A stretch of DNA of 64,000 nucleotides. Origin: Zygnema circumcarinatum SAG 698-1b (lineage: Eukaryota > Plantae > Zygnematophyceae). Shown in pieces: positions 2,478-60,591 of this stretch. Both the position numbers and the translations under genes were made by a program. A model generated the notes under the pieces. The model saw only the letters and a program-made list of their open reading frames with translations. It did not search any database and was not told the origin of the DNA. Numbering within the stretch: position 1 is the stretch's first letter; every line of letters starts with the position of its first letter. The stretch lies in NCBI GenBank assembly GCA_037447605.1, contig CM074815.1:620001-684000 (forward strand). The letters are read 5' to 3'.

Positions 2478-4059
2478 ATGGAGTCCCTCGACCTCCTCAC
2501 TTCCGCCTCCTTCCTCGCCCGCGAGGCCGCACGTGTGGGCGAGGCAGCGGAGAACCACAAGGAGAGCTGCCGGCGGCTGGCGGAGGGTCTGAGGGCGCTG
2601 CCCCCCCTCCTGGACGCGGCCAAAGGGGAGGGAGAGAGGGAGAGGGAGGGAGGAGAGGGAGGGGAGGGAGGGGGGGGCGGGCGGGCGGCGGGCAGGGCGG
2701 CGCTGGAGAGGCTGCAGGGGGCGATCAGGAAGGCGAGGGACCTGCTCGGGAGGTGTGGGCAGCCCTGCAGCAAAGTGTATATGGTGAGGGAGGGAGGGAG
2801 AGGAGGGAGGGAGGGAGGGAGGGAGGNNNNNNNNNNGGGGATATGGGGAGGGAGGGGGTGGAGGGAGGGAGGGGAGTATGGGGAGGGAGGGGCGGAGGGA
2901 GAGAGGTGTATAGTGAGGGAGGTCGGATGGAGAGAGGGGAGTATGGTGAGGGAGGGGATAGGAGGGAGAGATGGGGGGAAGAGGCGAGGTGTGGGGAAGG
3001 GGGAGATAGAGAGTGAGAGACTGTGGGAGAGAATAACAGATATGGGTTAGAAAGGAAGGTGGATGGACAGAGAGGGCCTTGATCTCCACAGAGAGTGAAT
3101 GGGAGACGTGGAGAGAGAGAGGGGGACAGAGACAGGGACCGTTGAGGGAGTGAGACTTTGCGTGTGCTTGAGAGAGAAGACACAGCAAGAGCGAGAGACG
3201 GAGATAAGGGAAGGCAGGGAGAGAGGCTAGAGAGCGAGTGAGTGAAAGAATGAATGAGACCTAGAGAGAGAAGGGAGAGATAGAGAGAGGGAGAAAGAGA
3301 GAGAGAGAGAGCCAGGGAGGGAGACGTTGAGGGTGAGGGGTCATGTCTTGAGTCAAACTACAGACTTCCGATGGGTTCAGGCAATGCCTATTTCTGTAAA
3401 TCGTGTTCATTCTGAAAAATCAAAAGGAAGTTTGGGTTGTTGGGGATGCAAAAGGGAGTACCGTAAACTGAAAACAAAGTGGCAGTTCTGCTTTAGACTG
3501 AAAATGGAGCTGCAGGCTCTGAACGAATGGGAAGCTGACAGCTGTCCCTCGTGGTTTCCGCAGGCGGTCCGTGCAGTGATAGTTGTGTCTCAGTTTCAGG
3601 AAGTCACAACGGAACTGTTACGGTGCATATGTGCTCTTCCCCTTGTGTGCGTTAAAGCTTCTGACAGTATTCGTTCGCAGGTGAGGGGGGGACTCTGCCC
3701 TTTGCCAAATGTATGGGTCTAAGTTTGAAGTTTTTTTCTTTCTGAATGTTTCCTTTGGGAATGCACCCACTTTGTTTTTATTGTTTTGATTCAGTTCTGT
3801 TTGTTTCGCTTTTAATATTTTCAGATGCAGCGTGTAATGCATGATGCTGGCATGCAGGGGTTGGTTCTCTTTGTGCCCCTCCCTTCGTCTCCTTCTCCCT
3901 CTTCTTCTGCTTCTCTCATCCTCCCTCTCTCTCCCGCCACCTTCTGCCTCTTGCTCTCTCGCCCTTCTTCTCCTCTCCTCCCTTTTACTCGCCTCCCCCT
4001 CCCCCTTCTCTCCTTCCTCCTCTCTCTCCCTCTCCTCCTCTCTCTCCTCTCTCCTCTCT

Positions 4060-4097
<38 letters not shown>

Positions 4098-7003
4098 TTT
4101 TTGCCATTTCCTTTACTCCTTCCATCCTCTGCCTGTCTGCAGGTGGCCCGTCTAAGTGCAGATTTCCGTCTGCTCCGTTACTCCGTTGATTCCCGCACAA
4201 AGCGAATTGCCAGCGAACTGGAACTGCTCAACATGGAACATAGAAAGGGGGTGAAATGCAACCAAGATGTGGTTTCAAAACTAGCATCCCAATTGGGCAT
4301 TCTCTCGGACGAAGTCTTCAAAGGCGAAATTTCGACCTTAGAAAGGGCAAGAAACTCAGCTTCAGCGGAAAACAAGCTTGCAGAAGCAGACTATCTCTCA
4401 CAGATCATATCTCTCTTACTATCTCTCGAACCGGAGCTTACTTATAATGGACTACTTGCCAAAAAGGAGCTGAAAAAGAAGATTCCAAAAGAGTATTGCT
4501 GCCCTCTCTCTCTGGAGATAATGGGTGATCCGGTGATTACTTCCACAGGCCAAACCTTTGAAAGAGCTTTTATAGAAAAGTGGATGAAGCAGGGAAGCCG
4601 AATTTGTCCTATTACTAAGCAGAGATTGGAGCACACCTCTCTTATTCCGAATTCCGGACTCAAATCTTCAATCACAAACTGGTGTGTGAGTAACGGAATT
4701 TCGATCCCACAAGCTCGGAAACTTCCAGAAAATGCATACATTAAGGGTCCGGGAATTGTCCGGTTTATGCTAATTCCTCAGGCACAGTTTAGCATTGACA
4801 ATGGGGGTAAGAATCGGTACCCAAATGGAGTAAATGGGGTAGATGGGAGTAATGGAGATATGAGCAGAAAATCGAGCATGGTAAAGGGAGCTTCTCGGAG
4901 AACGGTGAGGGCTAAACAGGGGGTTCGATTTGACTCTAAATTAGACAAAATTGACTTAAGGGAGGAAGCAGAAGAGGAGATGAAAATGGTGGAAGATTCG
5001 GAATCGAATTCAGTAAAAAAGTCGGAGTCTCCATGTGTTGTGTTGGACGGAAACGGAGAAGCGAGAAACGGAAAGGAGGGGTCTCTGGGCGAGCATGGAA
5101 ACGTCAGTTTTGTGTCCAGTTTCGTTCCAGAAACTGGGTTTTCCGTTTCATCTAACGGAGGGTCGGAAAACGGAGACAAAGATGGAGGAGATTTCAGCTT
5201 TCCTGCAAGTATAAGTGGAGATAGTTCAAGTCCCGAAACTTCCGGAGAACATGAATTCAGTTTTTCGACCGGTTCTCAGTCTCCAGATTCTTCCACCTTT
5301 TCTTTTACTTCAAGTGATAACATCAACAACAATAGTGGTAATAATACTAACAATGGAAATAACAACAACGGAACCAAGGCTGATTGGTTCAACGGATTCA
5401 AACTCAGAGATCCAATTTCCAAAACGGGAGAGAAGAGCGGAGAGAGAGAGAGAGGAGAGGAGAGTGGTAGTGGTAGAAGTGGTAGTAGAGAAAGGAGAGA
5501 AGTGGAGGGATTGGCAGAGGGGGTGAGAGAAGCCATGGCTCCCCTCGGACACTCGATAAAGTCAACCGAGTCTCCCGATTCTAGTAACTCAGGAAGACGG
5601 CGTCCGTTAACTTTACCGAGGAGGGACCCTGCAGCTTTAGAATATGGAAATTTTAGCCCTTCTTCAACGGCAGCTTCATCTCCAAGAAGTCCAGGAATGC
5701 GATTCATGGGAAGTCCAAGCCCCTTTTTCTTTGAAGGGGACCAAAATTCGGTTAATTTTAAGGGTTTATCTGATCGCCAATTGGCATCTCCCAAAGGTCC
5801 ACTTGAAAGGACTTCTTCTTCTTCATCTTCGATCGATGAAGACTTTAAAAAAGCTCTATTGGAAACTCCGAGAAGATCAAGTAGTAGTGGGACTCTTCTA
5901 GAAGTTTCCACTCCCTATTCTTCCTCTCCCGCTCGTGATCGCTCTCCCTCTCCATCTCCGTCTCCTTCATCTGCTCCCTTTCGTTCCTCTCCCTCTCCCT
6001 CTCCTTCTCCTTCGTCTACCTCTCCCTCTCCTTCACCTCATCCCTCTTGTTCCTCTACCTCTCTTTTCCCTTCTTCTCCCACTCCCTCCCCTTCTTCTGT
6101 GCTTTCTCCTCCTCCCTCTCCTCCCTCTCCTCCCACTCCTCCCTCTCCTACCTCTCCGCTGGATATGGAGGATGTGAGGCAAACTGTGAATCACTTAATT
6201 TCGGGAACGAGCGGTGAGAAGAGAAATGCAGCCCTTATCGTTCGAGAAAAAACCAAGTTGTCGGAGGAATATCGGAAAGCTTTTGGGGAAAACGGAGCCA
6301 TTAAACCCTTAATAGACATGTTGGTGGGTCCGAGGGGTTCAGAGCTTGTTCAAAGTGCAGTTTTTGCCCTTCTAAACCTCTCAATTTTCGACAGAAACAA
6401 GCCAGAAATCGTGACTAACGGAGCTATACCCCTCCTAGTAAGCCTCATGAAAACTGGAAACGAGATATGCAGGGAAGGAGCAGCCGGAACGATATTCAGT
6501 TTGTCAGTTTTGGATGAAAGTAAAGTGAGTATTGGGAGCACTCCGGGAGCAATTCCCCTCCTTATCGATGTGCTGGTTATGGGTACAAAGAGGGCAAAGC
6601 AGGACAGTGTTTTGGCCCTATATAACCTCTCCCTCATGCGATGCAACAAGCTACCCATAGTTCAAGCAGGAGCAATAAAACCCCTCGTTTACATATCCCG
6701 AAAGGGGCCCTCCGTTTTTGGGGTTCACATGGTTGAAAAATCCGTTGCAACGCTGTCGAATTTGTCGACTACAACGGAGGGAAGGAACGGCATTGTGGCT
6801 GCGAAGGGGATCCCCGTTCTATGCTCCGTTGTGGAGGACGGAGGCGAGAAGGCGAAGGAGGGGGCCGCCGCGTGTCTGTTGCGGCTGTGCGTGGGGAGTT
6901 TGGCGCACAAGGCACTCATATGGAACGAGGATGTCATCGCACCACTCATGATGTTGGCGCACAGCGGAACACCAAGGGCAAAGGTCAAGGTGAGGGCTTT
7001 CTC

Positions 7004-7057
<54 letters not shown>

Positions 7058-7314
7058 GCGCTAGTTTCTGTCCCTTGCTGCCTATCGTCCCTCCCGCCCG
7101 TCCCGTTCCTCGGCCTCCGTTTCTCCTCCTCCCCATTTCTTCTATCTATTGNNNNNNNNNNCCTCCCCTTCCCCTTCCCCACCAGTTGGAGCTGACAGAG
7201 GTGGAGGTGTGTTCGCAGGCGAAGGGTCTGTTGGCGGAATTCAACGCCTTCTCCTCAGCGGAGCACGCGAAGCCCCCCCAAGAGCAGCGGGAGAGTCTGA
7301 ATTCTTTATTTTGA
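2478..7314 (+). CDS. Plant U-box/armadillo-repeat E3 ubiquitin ligase (UND + U-box + long linker + ARM), 4 exons
   Basis: Exons ~2478-2783, 3564-3680, 4143-6989 and ~7219-7314, all GT-AG. U-box IPKEYCCPLSLEIMGDPVITSTGQTFERAFIEKWMKQGSRICPIT. ARM repeats include ENGAIKPLIDML, NGAIPLLVSLMKTG, CREGAAGTIFSLS and AKQDSVLALYNLS. Confidence 0.93.
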
Positions 7315-41579: not shown

Positions 41580-43527
41580 TTAGTCAAGCTCTGCGAGTGA
41601 CTCCGGCAGTACCGCCCCTCCCGGCCTCATCTCCCATTTCCTTTTCTTGCGATACAAATCGACCGCCGTCTGACGGAGCCTCTCTTTGGAAGTCGCTTTG
41701 TCTCCCATCGCCTCCGGCCAGTGATGAACTCCTCCCTCCTTTTTGGACTCCACACTTGACTTAAGGGCGGATTGAAGACCGTTCTTCACATTATCAAAAG
41801 GGTAGAACAGAAAGGGTTCAGAACGTAATCAAAGCATGGAGTTTTTCCGTTCGTTGAGCTTCTTTTTAGGTTTCGAGACTGTTATCTCTTCTGGGTTTGT
41901 GTTATTGGTGGTATGAAAAGGGGGTCGAGGGGAGAGAGATAGGAGAAGAGAGGGGGGTTGAGGGGATGGGAGGAAGGAAAGTCGGTCGGAGCTGAAAAGA
42001 GACGGGGGGTGATGCATAGATAGGAGGAAGTGAGAGAGAAGAGCGAGAGAGGGGAGAGGCGAGGAGAGAGGGAGAGGAAAATAGGAGGGGGGAGGAGGAG
42101 AGTGGAAACGGGGGACGTATGAGAAGCGGAGGGAGAGGGAGAAGGAGAGGGAGGAAAGGGAAAGTGGGAGAGAAAGAGGGCCACACCTTCTTTCGCAGAT
42201 TTGGGAGCATCTTGGGCGGCGCCAAAACCACATCTCCAAATATCACTTTCGGCCGAACGTCCTCAAAATCATCGTTTTGGACCCCTCCCTTGTTCTTGCT
42301 TTTCTTCTTCTTGGTTTCCAAGTATCTGAAGTAAAGCGAAAACATAAAAAGAGTGAGGGAACGAGAGAGGAGGTCAAAAGGGGAGAGAAACAGCTGAAGA
42401 AGGGGACAAAAAAAGGAAAACCTGCAAAAGAGTACAATCCCCAGAAAGCAAGAAAGCTCCCTCTCACCTTCTCTTCCTCTCACTCAGTCTGCTTTTCTTC
42501 GCCTTTGAATCGCCATCTCCCACTGCCAGGGCTGCCACCTCCCACCTCTCCATCCTTCTCCTCTTCTTCTTCTCCTTCTTCTCTTCTTTCTCCACTCCTT
42601 CCTCTTCTCCAACGCTGTCAGCTGCCCCTCCCTCACTACCTCCGATTTCAGAAACACCTTCTCCTCTCTCCCTCTTCCTTTTTTTCTCTACTCCATCCTT
42701 TCCTTCTACAGCACCACCCCCTCTGGACGTATCCACTCTGAAGGTTTCCGGTTCAGCGCCCTCATGAACATTTTCAGGGCTGCCCGAACCGACTGCAGCT
42801 TGTGCGTCTGCAGACGTGCTACTTAAGTTTTTCTTAATTTCTGCCCAAGTAGCAGCTTCCTGATCAACAAAATTTTCCTTTGTTGAACTTGAATCTTCCG
42901 CCTGCAAACATAGAATAGGTTTTCGGATGTTTGAGCAGGAAGAGAAAGACCTTCAACGCAATAAAAACTCAAAACCACAACAAACCATAGCATTAAAAAG
43001 CGTTAAGAAGTGTCAAAATTCTGCAAACCACAATCTCAAAAAGCCTTTACAGGTTCAGGACACCCTTCATACACTAGAGACTCCAAAGCACTCAATGCGC
43101 ACAGATTATTCCAAGAAATCCTCCTTCTCCCTCCCTCCCTCCCTCCCTCCCCCCCTCCTTCCTCATTCCTTTCCCCCTCCATCCTTCCTCTTCCCGCCCT
43201 CTCTCCCTCCACCCTTCCTCCTTCCTCTCTCCCTCCCTCCCACCCTCCTTCCTCCTGCCCCCTCCTCCCTCCTTCCTCCTCGTTCTTCCCTCTCTCCCTC
43301 CTCTCCTCCCTCCCTCCCCCTCTAAGTCCCTACGTCCTGATGAAGGGCTACCTGGTTCATGCGCGCTTTCTCTTCAAAGCGCTGGGCTGCAATTGCACTC
43401 TTCTGAGCCTTCATTTCCTTCTGCTCTGCACAATTTTCAGAAAAGGTTTCCTTTTTTCCATTCAAACTCTTTTATTTATGCCTTTGATTGATTTTCTTTC
43501 TCTTTAATGGAATGTTTTATAAAAGAA

Positions 43528-43564
<37 letters not shown>

Positions 43565-44928
43565 NNNNNNNNNNAAGAGGGCCACACCTTCTTTCGCAGA
43601 TTTGGGAGCATCTTGGGCGGCGCCAAAACCACATCTCCAAATATCACTTTCGGCCGAACGTCCTCAAAATCATCGTTTTGGACCCCTCCCTTGTTCTTGC
43701 TTTTCTTCTTCTTGGTTTCCAAGTATCTGAAGTAAAGCGAAAACATAAAAAGAGTGAGGGAACGAGAGAGGAGGTCAAAAGGGGAGAGAAACAGCTGAAG
43801 AAGGGGACAAAAAAAGGAAAACCTGCAAAAGAGTACAATCCCCAGAAAGCAAGAAAGCTCCCTCTCACCTTCTCTTCCTCTCACTCAGTCTGCTTTTCTT
43901 CGCCTTTGAATCGCCATCTCCCACTGCCAGGGCTGCCACCTCCCACCTCTCCATCCTTCTCCTCTTCTTCTTCTCCTTCTTCTCTTCTTTCTCCACTCCT
44001 TCCTCTTCTCCAACGCTGTCAGCTGCCCCTCCCTCACTACCTCCGATTTCAGAAACACCTTCTCCTCTCTCCCTCTTCCTTTTTTTCTCTACTCCATCCT
44101 TTCCTTCTACAGCACCACCCCCTCTGGACGTATCCACTCTGAAGGTTTCCGGTTCAGCGCCCTCATGAACATTTTCAGGGCTGCCCGAACCGACTGCAGC
44201 TTGTGCGTCTGCAGACGTGCTACTTAAGTTTTTCTTAATTTCTGCCCAAGTAGCAGCTTCCTGATCAACAAAATTTTCCTTTGTTGAACTTGAATCTTCC
44301 GCCTGCAAACATAGAATAGGTTTTCGGATGTTTGAGCAGGAAGAGAAAGACCTTCAACGCAATAAAAACTCAAAACCACAACAAACCATAGCATTAAAAA
44401 GCGTTAAGAAGTGTCAAAATTCTGCAAACCACAATCTCAAAAAGCCTTTACAGGTTCAGGACACCCTTCATACACTAGAGACTCCAAAGCACTCAATGCG
44501 CACAGATTATTCCAAGAAATCCTCCTTCTCCCTCCCTCCCTCCCTCCCTCCCCCCCTCCTTCCTCATTCCTTTCCCCCTCCATCCTTCCTCTTCCCGCCC
44601 TCTCTCCCTCCACCCTTCCTCCTTCCTCTCTCCCTCCCTCCCACCCTCCTTCCTCCTGCCCCCTCCTCCCTCCTTCCTCCTCGTTCTTCCCTCTCTCCCT
44701 CCTCTCCTCCCTCCCTCCCCCTCTAAGTCCCTACGTCCTGATGAAGGGCTACCTGGTTCATGCGCGCTTTCTCTTCAAAGCGCTGGGCTGCAATTGCACT
44801 CTTCTGAGCCTTCATTTCCTTCTGCTCTGCACAATTTTCAGAAAAGGTTTCCTTTTTTCCATTCAAACTCTTTTATTTATGCCTTTGATTGATTTTCTTT
44901 CTCTTTAATGGAATGTTTTATAAAAGAA

Positions 44929-54110: not shown

Positions 54111-55338
54111 GGCAGTCAGAGAGGCCGACACGTGGCGCGGACGCGCAGGGGAGGGAGATATGGGCAAAGGAGAGGTGGTGTACGGACGAGGACTAGGTAG
54201 ACACGTGGCGGGCCCCCATTGGCTGCCGGACGACCGGGGTTTGGGACAGTGGCCGATTCTCTCAACATCTCGATACGTTACGATACGATACGATACTGTA
54301 TCGCAATGTCGCTGAGTATATCGTGTATCTTTTATATCGTGTGTATCGGCAGTGGCGGATGTTTTCAATGCAATGCCATGCCATGTCATGCCATGCAATG
54401 CCATGCAAGCCGTGCCTGCCTGCCTTCCGAGGACGGGCGGGCCGCGGCAAAGCGAAGAAGACACGCTGAGGCGCAGTTGTGGCCGGCTCCACGGCTCCAT
54501 GAATTTGAAAGGGAGTTCGTGCTTGTTGTTGACAATTTGAGCCCGGTATCTCCCACTACTCTCACTCTCTGACATGCTTGCAAGTCTGAATCAAGGCAAC
54601 CCTCAAGTGCACACACTGAAAAGCAGATGATTCAAACAAGCAAAACACGGAAAGAGAATAAGTGAGGAGAAAGCACTATAACTAACAGATTTTTCCTGAA
54701 ACACGCTACGTTATGTGCCCTATCTTTTTCTCTCAGTTTTAATTCCCGCTATTTCCAACTGCCGCGGACTCCACTTTTGTCGCGTCTCGTTTCGTCACGT
54801 CACGGTCCCAAACATACTTGCCACGTCATATGTTGCCGCGACCAAAAATGTCGCTCCACGTGTTGCGCCCTTATACCTTGTAGACGCGCGCGCTTCGTAC
54901 ATTTCAAATCACCATCCGTACATTCGTACGAAAAAAGGTCTGTATCTATTCTGAAAAAGTATGAAACAGCATTTTTCGCCAAAAAAAACCTTTTTTTGCT
55001 GCCCGGCGAAAACTTACACTATATTCAGAAAAAGGACACTGTAAATAGTCGCCCCCTTTCCAATAATACGGATGTTTGTCCGTACAGTCCATTCGGTAGT
55101 GAACTCGTAAACTGCTAAGTTGAGTCCCTCCCTGAACGGCCCTTCCGGTCCCCCGTGACGTCATGGCTTCCCACTCCGGCGCCATGGGACCATAGCGGCT
55201 GCCACGCGGCGCCCTGTGAGGGCCTCAGAGCGAACGACGAAACCTTAGAAACCCTTAAAACCCTATAAATCCTGAAAACCCCGAGAGCCCTGAAAACCCC
55301 GGAAACCTTAAAAACACTGAGACGGCAGGACAGGCGCC

Positions 55339-55650
55339 ATGGCGGCCAAGCTCAGTGTCGTCCACGTGACCGTATTATTCTTGCTGCTGAGCACGCTGGC
55401 GGTGGGGGGTGCCACGTGGCAGCAGCTCCGTGGAGACGCGGCGGCGGGCGGGCGAGCGCTTCTTTCGGCGAAAGCGCCGCCGGGATGGGTCTCGTGCAAG
55501 AACGGACTGCCCAAGAAGAGCCGTGAGACCCCCTGTGGACCCCTCCGTGGTGCAAAGGGGCGGGCCTTAATTTGACAAACTGAGAGGCAGTTTTTGTATG
55601 ATTATGAAAGAGGAACGGCATCTCATTCGACTTCCTTTCTGTTCTTTCCC

Positions 55651-55704
<54 letters not shown>

Positions 55705-56192
55705 CTATCTCTCTCTCTCGCCCTCTCTCTCTCTCCCCCCCTCTCTCCATCCGCTCCCCTATCTCTCCTCTCTCTCTCTCTCTCTCTTTTTCCCCCCACT
55801 ATCTCTTTCCCCCTCTTTCTCACTCTGCGCCCCCCTCTCTCCTCCCCCTCTCTCCCCCTCTCTCGCTCCCCCCCCTCACTCTCCGCCCCCCTCTCTCCCC
55901 CTTTCCCCCCTCTCACGCTCCGCCCCACTCTCCCCCCCTCTCTCGCTCCCTCCCCCTCACTCTCCACCCCCGTCTCTCCCCCTCTCTTGCTCCCCACCCC
56001 CCCCTCACTCTCCGCCTTCCTCTCTCCCCCCCCCCCACCCACTCTCTCTCTGTCTCTCTGTTTCTCCCTCTCGTTTTCCTCTCCTTCCCCGTCCTCCTCG
56101 CAGCGTGCAAGAAGTCGGAGAGGATGTGCTGCGGGCGGGTCGGCGTGGTCCTGTGCGTCCCAAAGAGCGTTTCGTGCGATGGAATCGATTAG
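55339..56192 (+). CDS. Small secreted cysteine-rich peptide precursor CRP-1 (90 aa; 6-Cys C-C-CC-C-C)
   Basis: Exon 1 55339-55522 (donor gtgaga, phase 1) and exon 2 56104-56192 (acceptor ctcgcag) give MAAKLSVVHVTVLFLLLSTLAVGG-ATWQQLRGDAAAGGRALL-SAKAPPGWVSCKNGLPKKSPCKKSERMCCGRVGVVLCVPKSVSCDGID*. Confidence 0.85.
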
Positions 56193-57052
56193 TTCGGCCG
56201 ACCGCAAACATGTCAACTTCAAACTTCAAAGCGTTTTAGGGTTTGGGTTGTTCATGGTTTTAAGTATCTTGGGTTTAAGGATTTAAGCATCTTGGGTTTA
56301 AGGGTTATGGCCTTTTGGGAGGTTATTTTCGAAGTTGTTGTGAAGGATCAAAACGGGGTTGAGTTGAGGACGTTCTCGGCTCTCAAAGACGAGTTATTCT
56401 TGTTATTATCACGTTCTTCAATTACAACAGTTTCTTTCTTTCCATATTTTAAGGATTGCACATTGTGTTGGGTCCGAATGAATGCGTGGTTGAGAGTGAT
56501 CGTGGTTCAAAACACTCATTTAAAAAAAAAAATTGAAAAAAGGGTGGGCGTTGGGGTCCGGATGGAATGGAAACGTAGGAAAAAAAAAAAAAAATGAATT
56601 TTCGTCCGTTTCGTTTGCTCTTGCCTCAGTGCTGTGCGTGTCCGTAAATTCGTAAAATGGGCCCTCCGGATTTCAGAATTTGCAAGAAATCAGAAACTCG
56701 TTAGAGTTTTCGCCTCCGCGGACATTCCGGGGGGGGCTGTTTTATCAGCAGCGTCTGAAGTTCGGCATCCTACTCGAGTTTTTCCGAATTTCAGAAATTC
56801 GGTACAAATGTTTGGGAACGTTTCAGCGTCCTCATTTATCCGAACAACCTCAACTTTAATAGGCCTAATTGGGCTAAAAGTGATGAGACTTCACCAAGAC
56901 CGTACCTCCAATGTTCCCTCTCTCCCTCTCTCTCTCTCTCCCTCCCTCCCTTTCTCTATCTCGTGAATTGACTATGCATGTGAGAAGATATGAAACATAT
57001 ACGTCCGATGGCCTCGCCATCGTAGATCAATCGGAGCATTCAAGTCAAATCT

Positions 57053-57248
57053 CATAGTGCGACACATGTACCACAGTGCGACATGCATGCGACGCCGCGC
57101 ATGTGATGCTAGGCGCCTCAAATAGTCAAATGTGCAGCGTTTTTGGCGACTCAATTTTGTTTGCGACCCATTTATGAGCGTCGCACTATGCGAAATACGT
57201 CGCACTATGGGATAATTCGTCGCACTATGGATAATGCGTCTCACTATG
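57053..57248. repeat. Head-to-head arrays of an 11-12-bp motif (GTCGCACTATG) with ~19-bp period; possible MITE/foldback remnant
   Basis: Reverse copies CATAGTGCGAC 57053-57063 and CACAGTGCGAC 57072-57082. Forward copies CGTCGCACTATG at 57179, 57198 and 57218, and a variant at 57237. Confidence 0.7.
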
Positions 57249-58016
57249 TGCTTTCCGCATATTTGAACAGTTCATTCCCGAACTCCACCCGACCGAAATC
57301 CAAATTCTTCTTTTTCTTTCAAATTCCGCGAATTGTGAATACGGAATTTGGTACTGAATTTTCAATACCTAATGCGCCACCGACGGCGTGGGACCCGCCG
57401 GGTTTTCCGGACACAACGGCTATAAGCTTTCAGGCTTCTACCGCACGACTGTCCGTACAACTGGCAGGAGCCGCGCCAAGCTGTCAATGTACGAACAGTA
57501 CGAACCATACGGAACTGAACGCCCTTGCTCTATGCTGCTTTCCCTGCTGACTAAACTGTGATTAACTGTATAGTCAGAGTCCCCTCCCTCGAAAATAACG
57601 CAGTCATGGTCAAATATGATGGCCACGACTAACCAGGAAAGATTTGTGGTCGGCGTGATGTACGAACACTTGTACGAACTGCTGACATGTCACGACCCGG
57701 CAATTATTACTGCTGCCAGAAGCTTGCCACGTGTCACTCCCTTGCTGACGAGGACCGAATCGGATCCTGCCGCTCGATGGTCGGCAAACCTCCACCGCCG
57801 TCAGCAGAGGCGACAAGGCGAGGGCGCACCACGTGGCACGTGCAGATTAACGCAGGACCAAATGGACAAGTATTTTCTGTCCTATGCGTAAGAAAATCCT
57901 TGACCATTCGTACGGTCACCTTTCGTACGGTCGGCCGGTCCCTCCCTGCTTCGTCCGCGCCCGCCACAAAGCGACGCGCGTTGGAGCGCTCCGAGGAGTC
58001 CCCGTAAGCCGCAGCC

Positions 58017-58585
58017 ATGGCCGCCCCACCGAACGCGCGCCACGTGGCAGCCCTCGCGCTCGTCTTCCTCGTCCTCGTCGCGGCGGCGCTGAACGTAGAG
58101 GCCGCCACGTGGCAGCTCCGCGGCGCGGGCGGCCAATTGGAGGGCCCGGAGGAGAGCCACGTGGCAGCGCACGGGCGAGCGCTGCTGACCGTGAAAAAGC
58201 CGCCGAAGGTGAAATGCGTGAAGGGGGGACCGCCAAAAAAAAATAAGCGTAAGACCCCATTTGCAACCCCATCTCAAGCGCAGGCGGTTTTAGTTCTTCA
58301 GGGGTTTTTTTTTTCCAGCTTTTTTTGAAATCAGAAACTTGGTTTTAGGAGGTTTTTGAAACCCGCGAGCTCCTTTCTGCTCCTCCGACGCTTCTTCTGA
58401 AAGCGCCGCGGATTGCCGAAGTTTTGCAGGCTCTAACTCTTTTTTTTTTTTTTTGCATTTGAATTTGCATTTGCGGTGTGCCCGCAGTGTGCCCCGACCC
58501 GAAGTACCCGCGAGTGTGTTGTGACAGCGCGGGCTACGTCGTATGCGTGGCCAAAGGCGTCATGTGCCTCAAGCCGCCCGCGTGA
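58017..58585 (+). CDS. Small secreted cysteine-rich peptide precursor CRP-2 (109 aa; paralog of CRP-1)
   Basis: Exon 1 58017-58248 (donor gtaaga, phase 1) and exon 2 58488-58585 (acceptor cccgcag) give MAAPPNARHVAALALVFLVLVAAALNVEA-ATWQLRGAGGQLEGPEESHVAAHGRALL-TVKKPPKVKCVKGGPPKKNKLCPDPKYPRVCCDSAGYVVCVAKGVMCLKPPA*. Confidence 0.87.
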
Positions 58586-60140
58586 GGGAGAGGGAGAGGG
58601 AGAGGGAGGGAGAGGGAGAGGGAGAGGGAGAGGGAGGGAGAGGGAGAGGGAGAGGGACAGGGAGGGAGAGGGTGAGGGAGCGGGTGAGGGAACAGGCGCC
58701 TTTCGTGTTTCCAGGGAATTGTGTTGAGATCCGTACAATCGGACATAGAGCCGTACGAAACCTTTGTACGGAAGTAATGTACGAAACTGTACGAATGGAG
58801 TCACACGTGTTGAGTTTAGGAAGTGATGTGAATCCCTAGACCCTTTGATCGAATGGTTCATGTTGTTCATCATGTTATGCTTTTGGCGGCGAGGTTTTAG
58901 GAAGGACAAGTATAAGACTACTGTTTTCTGTGTCTTTGTCAACCGGAGCTTTGAGGGAAAGCATAGAATGCTTGTGCTCCTGTTCAACTTTGGAATAAAG
59001 CTTTTGGGGATAAGTGTGTTGTGCACTGAATGATTAAGATTGCTGAAAATGTCTATGAGAGGAAAATCTTCTAGTAGATGAAATAGAAGAAACTGAGAGA
59101 GAAGTAAGGCCCAGTTTTACATTCTGAAGGCTCGCTTTGGACACATGGGGTTTGCATTAATGAATGGACACGCGGTGCATCGCCTCGTGTGTTTGATGTC
59201 CAGCTCTGTCCCTCCATGCGCCTGCCCGTGCATACATACATTCATGCATGCATGCATGCATGATGGCATGGAATGGCATGGCATGCATGCTCGCGGCGTG
59301 GCATGGCTTTGTCGCCCCAAAATGGAAAGGAGCAAAGATGGATGGATGGATGGTGGATGCATGCAGCCCTCTTTCAAAGAAATGTTTATTCAAATATGGC
59401 CACGGGTTTGCTTGGCTTCGCGTGCGCTGGTTGACTAGAATTGACCAGCTAATGACCCGTTTGCAAGCCCTGAACATCGGAAACCACTCGCCGATGGCCA
59501 ATGCCCACCACGCGTCCCTTAGGGTTTGACCGCCTTGGACCAGTACAAATGCAGAATCCGTATCGTACGGTAATCACTCCGATTCCGCAGCTGTGGCCTG
59601 TACGGAGACGCATTTCCAAGAGCTGCCGGGGTTGGGGGCACAGCGGCGGACTCTGGCAAGATGACCAGTACGGCATATTTTGTTTCCAGGCTGTTGACAT
59701 CAGTACTGATGTACGGCTAAGATTCGCATGATTGGAGCTTGTCGGTAGGACGTACGGCAAAGTACGGATTATTAGTGATACAGTACTGTAAAACCGAGCA
59801 GGCTGAGAATTTTTTCTGAAATTCTCAATCTTACTGAAAATAGGGTCGAACTTTGATTGGAGCAAGCACATGTCTTGTCGTTTTGTACTACAGTACATGT
59901 CACTTTCTGTACGGGCTTTCCACAAAATCAGCAGTCATCTGTACAATAACTGTACAAAAACGACAAAACCCCAATCATTGCTTTTCTAGAGTCGTACGGA
60001 CAGCACACAACCTTAAGTCCGGTCGGAGCGACCGCGACCGACGGTTACTGCCGCAGCCGGAAACTCGGCACGTGGCGAGCGGCTATTGGGTTTCAGGAGC
60101 TTCACCGACAGACCAGATCCGCTACCGTTATTATTCGATA

Positions 60141-60362
60141 CCAATGGTTGGCGCTCGGACGGAGCGGGCAGACCAATGGCTGGCACACGAACGGAGCGGG
60201 CAGACCAATTGGCGTCGGACGGAGCGGGCAGACCAATGGTTGGCGCACGGACGGAGTGGGCAGTCCAATAGTTGGCGGACGGATGGAGCGAGCAGACCAA
60301 TGGTTGGCGCTCGGACAGAGGGGACAGACCAATGGGCTCGCGCCAACCATTGGTCTGCTCGC
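60141..60362. repeat. ~32-bp minisatellite (6+ copies, consensus CCAATGGTTGGCGCTCGGACGGAGCGGGCAGA) ending in an inverted copy
   Basis: Units start at 60141, 60173, 60205, 60233, 60265, 60297 and 60329. The segment 60341-60362 is the reverse complement of the unit junction. Confidence 0.88.
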
Positions 60363-60591
60363 CTCCGCCTCCGCCACCGCCTCCGCCACCGCCTCCGGAT
60401 GTGGATGGCCACAACCTTAATCCTTCCATCTTCGATTGACTAAGATTGACCAACTAATGTGGACGTTAGGAAAGATATGCTCTGGCCACTTCCCAATCGC
60501 CAGAGGAAGATGGTTTAAGAGGACGAAAGAACGGCAAGTTTTGTGATTAGTGAAAGGACCCAACAAATGCTGACTACCCAAATTATCATTT

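Follow-up and report, generated by a model that had tools for sequence, protein, structure and literature searches.

Do two short, intron-split genes lying in tandem in the alga Zygnema circumcarinatum SAG 698-1b encode a secreted cysteine-rich peptide and, if so, of which family? Plant defence and the signalling between plant cells rely centrally on small secreted cysteine-rich peptides; nearly all of the families known so far were established from land plants, and annotation based on open reading frames (ORFs) overlooks them. The two genes, here called A and B, lie in a stretch of 64,000 nucleotides (nt) of contig CM074815.1 (assembly GCA_037447605.1, positions 620,001 to 684,000 of the forward strand), which is referred to as the window and whose numbering is used throughout. 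They had been proposed in a reading made from the letters alone (the sequence-only reading), which was followed up here with public RNA data and with sequence, profile, and structure searches. The reading that we prefer, with an about even chance of being right, is that A and B are old tandem duplicates encoding a small secreted cysteine-rich pre-pro-peptide of no described family, which would act at the cell surface in large amounts.

Evidence on the RNA level was taken from Logan contigs that cover positions 55200-58800 and come from four public runs (X1, X2, X3, and X5) made with the same organism. For gene A, the joint 55522/56104, which skips 581 nt with GT..AG borders, was present in contigs of all four runs with a depth of 744-2021, and a single 636-nt contig covers 55240-55522 plus 56104-56456. 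A loose contig end at 56446 consists of a run of A followed by adapter sequence and marks the poly(A) site of this gene. The contigs of gene B break at the junction; past 58248 the letters are TGTGCCCCGACCCGA(A), i.e., those of 58488-58503, in three runs (X2, X3, and X5), so that exon 1 runs into the first 15-16 letters of exon 2, and one X2 contig begins exactly at 58488, the first letter of this exon. Both junctions named in the sequence-only reading are thereby found in RNA. The exon depth was 500-2,000 for gene A and 3,400-77,800 for gene B, compared to 0-33 for intergenic DNA and 17-36 for contigs retaining the gene B intron. Since exon depth lies far above intron and intergenic depth, the runs behave as RNA libraries. 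Both genes are transcribed and spliced as predicted. By contig word depth, which is a crude measure, the gene B message exceeds that of gene A several-fold to about 40-fold, and in the runs examined gene B yields one of the very abundant messages. In three runs from 2017 with the same species label (X8-X10), about 1% of the sampled words of the stretch was recovered; these near-empty runs, as opposed to the huge gene B depth in the runs from 2019-2024, reflect either condition-dependent expression or a different strain.

The two genes have a common architecture (Table 1). Joining of the exons yields products of 90 amino acids (aa) for gene A and 109 aa for gene B, which are 43% identical (blastp, E 8e-18). 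When the gene A product was used for tblastn on the six-frame translated window, exon 1 (E 2e-7) and exon 2 (E 5e-6) of gene B were recovered, and a third gene copy was not found in the 64 kb by this search. The phase-1 intron is located one codon before the second cysteine (Cys2) in both genes, and both introns begin with GT(G/A)AGACCCC. A and B are real paralogues with a similarity beyond chance; the tandem two-exon pair with near-identical intron starts, as first described from the letters, is thus borne out by the joined ORFs, the protein comparison, and the spliced RNA. The third codon positions have a GC content of 0.81-0.83. A and B have 43 identical residues, of which 20 are encoded by different codons, including both Leu of RALL (CTT vs. 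CTG) and the CC pair (TGC vs. TGT), which argues for conservation at the protein level, and these many synonymous differences suggest that the duplication is old. Kept despite synonymous change are the six Cys, the GRALL motif, GxPKK in loop 1, K-x2-R-x-CC, and the end G-x-V-x-C-V-x-K-x-V-x-C.

All six Cys follow GRALL in both products, and five of them are encoded by the second coding exon of only 90-98 nt. The spacing is C-x9-C-x6-CC-x7-C-x6-C in A and C-x11-C-x8-CC-x7-C-x6-C in B, with the common core CC-x3-G-x-V-x-C-V-x-K-x-V-x-C. As a degenerate DNA pattern, this core matched only the A and B sites in the window and was not obtained in any of 100 shuffles, so that the six-Cys frameworks and the shared core stand as originally read. 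The tail after GRALL comprises 48 residues in A and 52 in B, with an isoelectric point of 9.3 and 9.7 and a net charge of about +5 and +9, respectively.

The N-termini consist of a basic residue, a hydrophobic core of 16-18 residues (12-residue Kyte-Doolittle means of 2.5 and 3.4), and small residues (VGG or VEA) directly before ATWQ. Judged by these rules, the layout is of the classic signal-peptide type. With hydrophobic N-termini, six C-terminal Cys, and a length of 90 or 109 aa, both products have the features of a generic secreted pre-pro cysteine-rich peptide. The Cys-free stretch up to the end of GRALL comprises 18 residues in A and 28 in B, and GRALL marks the border between this variable stretch and the conserved basic Cys domain. 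Its R-A-L-L is present and kept in both genes and matches the consensus RxxL/RxLx, which has been reported as the motif of both AtS1P/SBT6.1 and SBT3.5; in RALF23, the cut follows RRIL and is abolished by a change of RR to GG (PMC13082318). From the motif, we infer a cleavage of the S1P/SBT6.1 type after GRALL.

The ATWQ motif is ambiguous, since the same letters may also be a DNA element. Its codons, GCC ACG TGG CAG, are identical in both genes and form the perfect G-box GCCACGTGGC. The 13-mer GCCACGTGGCAGC, whose copies were also recovered as repeat families D5, D6, and D9, occurs four times in the window, each time in exon 1 of A or B and with otherwise unlike flanks. It is read as ATWQ in two of the four copies and as HVAA in the other two, and codons 9-10 (H-V) are CACGTG in both genes. 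Within 57700-58200, six CACGTG were counted compared to 0.29 expected (P 6e-7). One DNA word in two frames is easier explained by a transcription-factor site than by a peptide function, and the ATWQ peptide motif may, at least in part, be a DNA element. Of the proposed ATWQ(Q)LRG motif at the predicted cleavage site, the presence in both genes was therefore upheld, while its meaning as a peptide motif was weakened by the reuse of the 13-mer. The shorter word CACGTGGCAG was found 11 times in the window, with about 0.1 expected, and is probably a common cis-element of the genome.

Taken as a pathway, the preferred reading would run as follows. The hydrophobic N-terminus would send the precursor into the endoplasmic reticulum, where it would be cut just before ATWQ, and a Golgi subtilase of the S1P/SBT6.1 type or a similar one would cut after GRALL (RxLL) and remove a pro-piece of 18-28 residues. 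Three disulfides would hold the freed peptide of 48-52 residues together as a small beta-rich mini-protein, possibly of the knottin kind. Present in bulk, it would act stoichiometrically at the cell surface, either in antimicrobial defence or as a polycation on anionic wall or mucilage polymers, and a role as a trace hormone would be less likely. The G-boxes in and upstream of exon 1, perhaps together with GTAC clusters around gene B, would drive a high and probably condition-dependent transcription. An antimicrobial or wall-binding peptide is favoured over a hormone-like signal because the mRNA is very abundant; the sequence-only reading had left the choice between a signal and an antimicrobial family open, and of the two the signal has become the less favoured.

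Several points weigh against this reading. Transcription, splicing, and sequence conservation were observed, and every later step is one that we infer. The signal peptides were judged by a rule of thumb rather than by a trained predictor, contig word depth reflects expression poorly, and the fold class and the lack of relatives were weakly tested, with exon pieces rather than the full six-Cys domain. RxxL motifs are short and common, the P3 residue of GRALL is Ala, while canonical plant S1P sites are dibasic (RRIL, RRLL), and the pro-regions are not acidic, unlike the classic charge-neutralising pro-pieces of antimicrobial peptides.

The last points bear directly on an alternative without pro-peptide processing, in which the whole chain of 65-80 residues would be the mature form and GRALL and ATWQ would be kept for folding, sorting, or as a DNA element. 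This would agree with the Ala at P3, where proven plant S1P sites have Arg or Lys, and with the coincidence of ATWQ and a G-box 13-mer, which is read in another frame elsewhere in gene B. However, GRALL was kept through synonymous changes in both Leu codons, and it is placed exactly where the variable Cys-free stretch gives way to the conserved basic Cys domain, so that we consider an unprocessed chain possible but doubtful.

Whether A and B belong to a described family was addressed by homology searches with exon pieces, in which the Cys domain was represented by exon 2 alone (five of six Cys), giving low power. A word-indexed protein search, made with exon 1 of either gene, returned nothing, not even the query itself; the collection is therefore without these products, and its blanks say little. 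In Pfam and NCBIfam, the four exon pieces gave only sub-threshold noise at E up to 10. Ldl_recept_a on exon 2 of A (E 0.08, sub-threshold) and LpqS on exon 1 of B (E 0.008, 16.5 bits vs. a cut-off of 35 bits) were rejected as noise from Cys composition or the signal peptide. Neither exon 2 of B nor a two-row exon-2 profile matched PDB sequences. Against 1.84 billion representative proteins, this profile, which with 31 positions has little power against billions of sequences, gave one match (P0001); it was rejected as a repeat protein with four PDPKYPR copies and without the Cys pattern. A profile-based locus search in metagenome contigs found none, and a degenerate core scan of the same kind of contigs gave one match (L001), which was rejected as chance since it lies antisense within a bacterial ORF of 339 aa. 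The core scan of prokaryote-genome and viral contigs gave none. These DNA-level scans took in metagenome, prokaryote-genome, and viral contigs, with the algal and plant genomes likeliest to hold relatives lying outside them. At the sequence level, the blanks exclude close relatives in the collections searched. In the literature on algal cysteine-rich peptides, nothing describing the A/B family was found. The sequence-only reading had been unable to assign the products to the RALF, EPF, defensin, GASA, or squash-inhibitor families, and Pfam, PDB, and the large protein searches gave no assignment to these or to hevein either. By sequence, A and B are candidates for a new family within a familiar class, the secreted cysteine-rich pre-pro-peptides.

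A hormone-like ligand was also weighed, i.e., a six-Cys peptide acting as a cell-to-cell or autocrine signal via a receptor kinase as a functional analogue of RALF or EPF. RALF peptides (PF05498) have four Cys forming two disulfides and a YISY-type motif at the mature peptide's N-terminus. RALF23 and other S1P-processed RALFs have in common with A and B the green plant lineage, a signal peptide, a pro-region, and an RxxL-type site immediately ahead of a basic disulfide peptide of about 50 residues, and by language-model features exon 1 is nearest to streptophyte peptide-hormone precursors (0.70-0.78), which are leads only. However, A and B have six Cys including a CC pair, no YISY or other RALF motif, and R-A-L-L instead of RR-x-L, and the exon pieces gave no RALF match at E up to 10. 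EPF/EPFL peptides contain C-x-C elements among their six to eight Cys as well as a long variable loop and, to our knowledge, are so far known from land plants only. Like the peptides proposed here, they are subtilase-processed, secreted, C-terminal six- to eight-Cys peptides of about 45-50 residues; A and B differ by the CC pair in place of C-x-C, since EPFs have no CC and carry the long loop between two Cys clusters, and no EPF match was obtained with the exon pieces in Pfam. With the very abundant mRNA, which is unusual for ligands, and with no receptor gene nearby, a hormone-like ligand appears unlikely.

Knottins (inhibitor cystine knots) are defined by disulfides 1-4, 2-5, and 3-6, the third of which threads the ring formed by the first two. 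A and B have the order C-C-CC-C-C with loops of 9/11, 6/8, 0, 7, and 6 residues, long enough for such a ring, which is necessary but not sufficient for the assignment. AlphaFold2, run on the exon-2 piece of B (five of six Cys) with A as second row, predicted a beta-hairpin of residues 8-13 and 16-22 (pLDDT 78), and this predicted hairpin bears the CC pair and Cys5. In Foldseek, the 31-residue exon-2 model, which is very short, had no PDB match below E 6. By language-model features, the exon-2 piece of B is nearest to cyclotide and spider-toxin knottins (0.72-0.76, leads only). A cystine-knot or hevein-like fold is conceivable for the whole domain. The same Cys order is found in plant knottins and 6C heveins, and plant knottins such as Mj-AMP, PAFP-S, and the amaranth alpha-amylase inhibitor are likewise small, basic, beta-rich, and abundantly expressed (PMC4695807), the beta-rich fold of A and B being a prediction. 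A knottin-type inhibitor of a protease, amylase, or other hydrolase directed against grazers or microbes, as known for squash inhibitors and the amaranth inhibitor, would fit this framework and the language-model neighbours. Yet the knot is putative, the loop lengths differ from those of the families named, no Pfam or other sequence match was found, and the conserved surface shows many Lys instead of a canonical inhibitory loop, which makes such an inhibitor quite improbable.

Hevein-type chitin-binding domains (type 1, PF00187) have the pattern C-x4-CC-x5-C-x6-C, and Ser together with an aromatic triad binds chitin. The 6C hevein-like peptides Ac-AMP1/2 have the Cys order of A and B, and CC-x-S-x-G-Y in gene B recalls the chitin-binding site. 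In contrast, the spacing of A and B is x6/8-CC-x7-C-x6-C instead of CC-x5-C, gene A has no aromatic residue after CC, and Chitin_bind_1 was not matched by the exon pieces in Pfam. Plant defensins (gamma-thionins) have eight Cys with CxxxC on a helix and GASA/snakin peptides twelve; A and B have six Cys, no CxxxC, and no Pfam match to either with the exon pieces.

A bolder version of the processed peptide would be an undescribed S1P-processed, polycationic, disulfide-knotted family, belonging to the algal sister lineage of land plants, that acts RALF-like at the wall by pectin binding and/or via a receptor, with exonic G-boxes dictating part of the peptide; we regard this as a long shot. Gene B is flanked by GTAC, the core of copper-response elements bound by SBP-domain factors, with 13 copies in 57400-58800, most of them in paired GTACGAA or GTACGG, compared to 3.4 expected (P 5e-5), but a copper-regulated secreted Cys-rich peptide under an SBP-type factor is scarcely credible, since an even Cys count in a protein that is secreted speaks for disulfides instead of free thiols and other bins of the window are GTAC-rich as well. 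Further paired GTAC motifs lie upstream of gene A (54894-54926) and at 59565-59994.

Table 1. Features of genes A and B and of their flanks (window coordinates; a dot indicates that no strand was assigned)
Feature	Position	Strand	Remark
Gene A 5' untranslated region (UTR), minimum extent	55240-55338	+	X1 contig starts at 55240; X2, X3, and X5 contigs reach upstream of 55200
Gene A exon 1, coding	55339-55522	+	sequence reading; junction contigs in 4 runs
Gene A signal-peptide-like residues 1-24	55339-55410	+	sequence reading
G-box 13-mer GCCACGTGGCAGC	55411-55423	.	gene A, read as ATWQ
Gene A GRALL	55450-55464	+	ends pro-region ATWQQLRG...GRALL; Lys/Pro lead and Cys1 follow
Gene A intron	55523-56103	+	581 nt, phase 1, starts GTGAGACCCC, ends AG
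Gene A exon 2, coding	56104-56193	+	Cys2-Cys6, stop TAG
Gene A 3' UTR to poly(A) site	56194-56446	+	contigs end at 56442-56456
Paired GTAC cluster (GTACGAA, GTACGG)	57455-57931	.	upstream of gene B
Three further CACGTG boxes	57728, 57830, 57837 (57728-57842)	.	gene B 5' flank
Gene B exon 1, coding	58017-58248	+	word depth 3,400-77,800
Gene B signal-peptide-like residues 1-29	58017-58103	+	sequence reading
G-box 13-mer GCCACGTGGCAGC	58039-58051	.	gene B codons 8-12, read as (R)HVAA, signal peptide
G-box 13-mer GCCACGTGGCAGC	58104-58116	.	gene B, read as ATWQ
G-box 13-mer GCCACGTGGCAGC	58156-58168	.	gene B pro-region, read as (S)HVAA
Gene B GRALL	58173-58187	+	ends pro-region ATWQLRG...GRALL; Lys/Pro lead and Cys1 follow
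Gene B intron	58249-58487	+	239 nt, phase 1, starts GTAAGACCCC, ends AG
Gene B exon 2, coding	58488-58585	+	Cys2-Cys6, stop TGA
Gene B 3' UTR, minimum extent	58586-58800	+	depth 5,300-12,800 at 58709-58800; contigs continue past 58800
GTAC-rich stretch	58733-58795	+	gene B 3' UTR

Apart from the spliced contigs, there are RNA contigs with loose ends at four points (55218, 55411, 57998, and 58096) that continue for 30-255 letters beyond the gene match. Their sequences were absent from the window in a search allowing up to 4 errors, so that neither upstream exons nor paralogues were deduced from them. At two of these points the break adjoins a G-box 13-mer, and the end after 55411 goes in frame into a run of Cys codons. 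The loose ends could represent paralogues elsewhere with a common signal-peptide part or assembly chimeras.

Low-complexity DNA accompanies both genes. The transcribed 5' leader of gene A contains telobox-like AAACCCT/AAACCTT repeats (55240-55320; family D10), and its intron consists mostly of (CT)n and C-rich sequence (55636-56100; families D1 and D2). The 3' UTR of gene B opens with (GAGGGA)n (58586-58690), which is complement-like to the tract in the gene A intron, and a third such tract is located at 56912-56963. Between A and B, TCGCACTATG occurs four times at about 20-nt spacing (57049-57082 and 57180-57248) with an inverted arm about 100 nt upstream, and has the look of either a small inverted-repeat element or an array of factor sites. 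Downstream of gene B, a unit of ~32 nt with CCAAT (ACCAATGGTTGGCGC...GGGCAG) is repeated in about six tandem copies at 60140-60347 and has a perfect 23-nt inverted arm, with the inverted copy at 60340-60376. No Pfam domain was found in any ORF flanking A and B, and Rfam gave nothing for 52-64 kb of the window. Further away, an intron-less ORF of 1079 aa (3825-7064, + strand) encodes a plant-type U-box E3 ligase, recognised by its U-box, its Arm repeats, and the plant PUB ARM region and in keeping with a green-lineage genome. Two identical chance tblastn matches 1401 nt apart (42659-43013 and 44060-44414) indicate that about 1.4 kb was duplicated in tandem.

Eukaryote genomes commonly contain cysteine-rich orphans restricted to one lineage, and without a function the interest of one more such pair is therefore moderate. 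In A and B, an alga close to land plants has two genes directly supported by RNA, with very high expression, intron-split coding regions, and no detectable relatives, and they offer a concrete pair of peptides for the study of antimicrobial, wall-binding, or signalling activity. Their precursors are a natural substrate for the question of S1P-type pro-peptide processing in streptophyte algae. A peptide motif that is possibly a G-box read in two frames also calls for caution in motif-based peptide discovery. Should A and B indeed form a RALF-like wall family, a family separate from those of land plants would have carried out processed cysteine-rich wall signalling before or alongside them.

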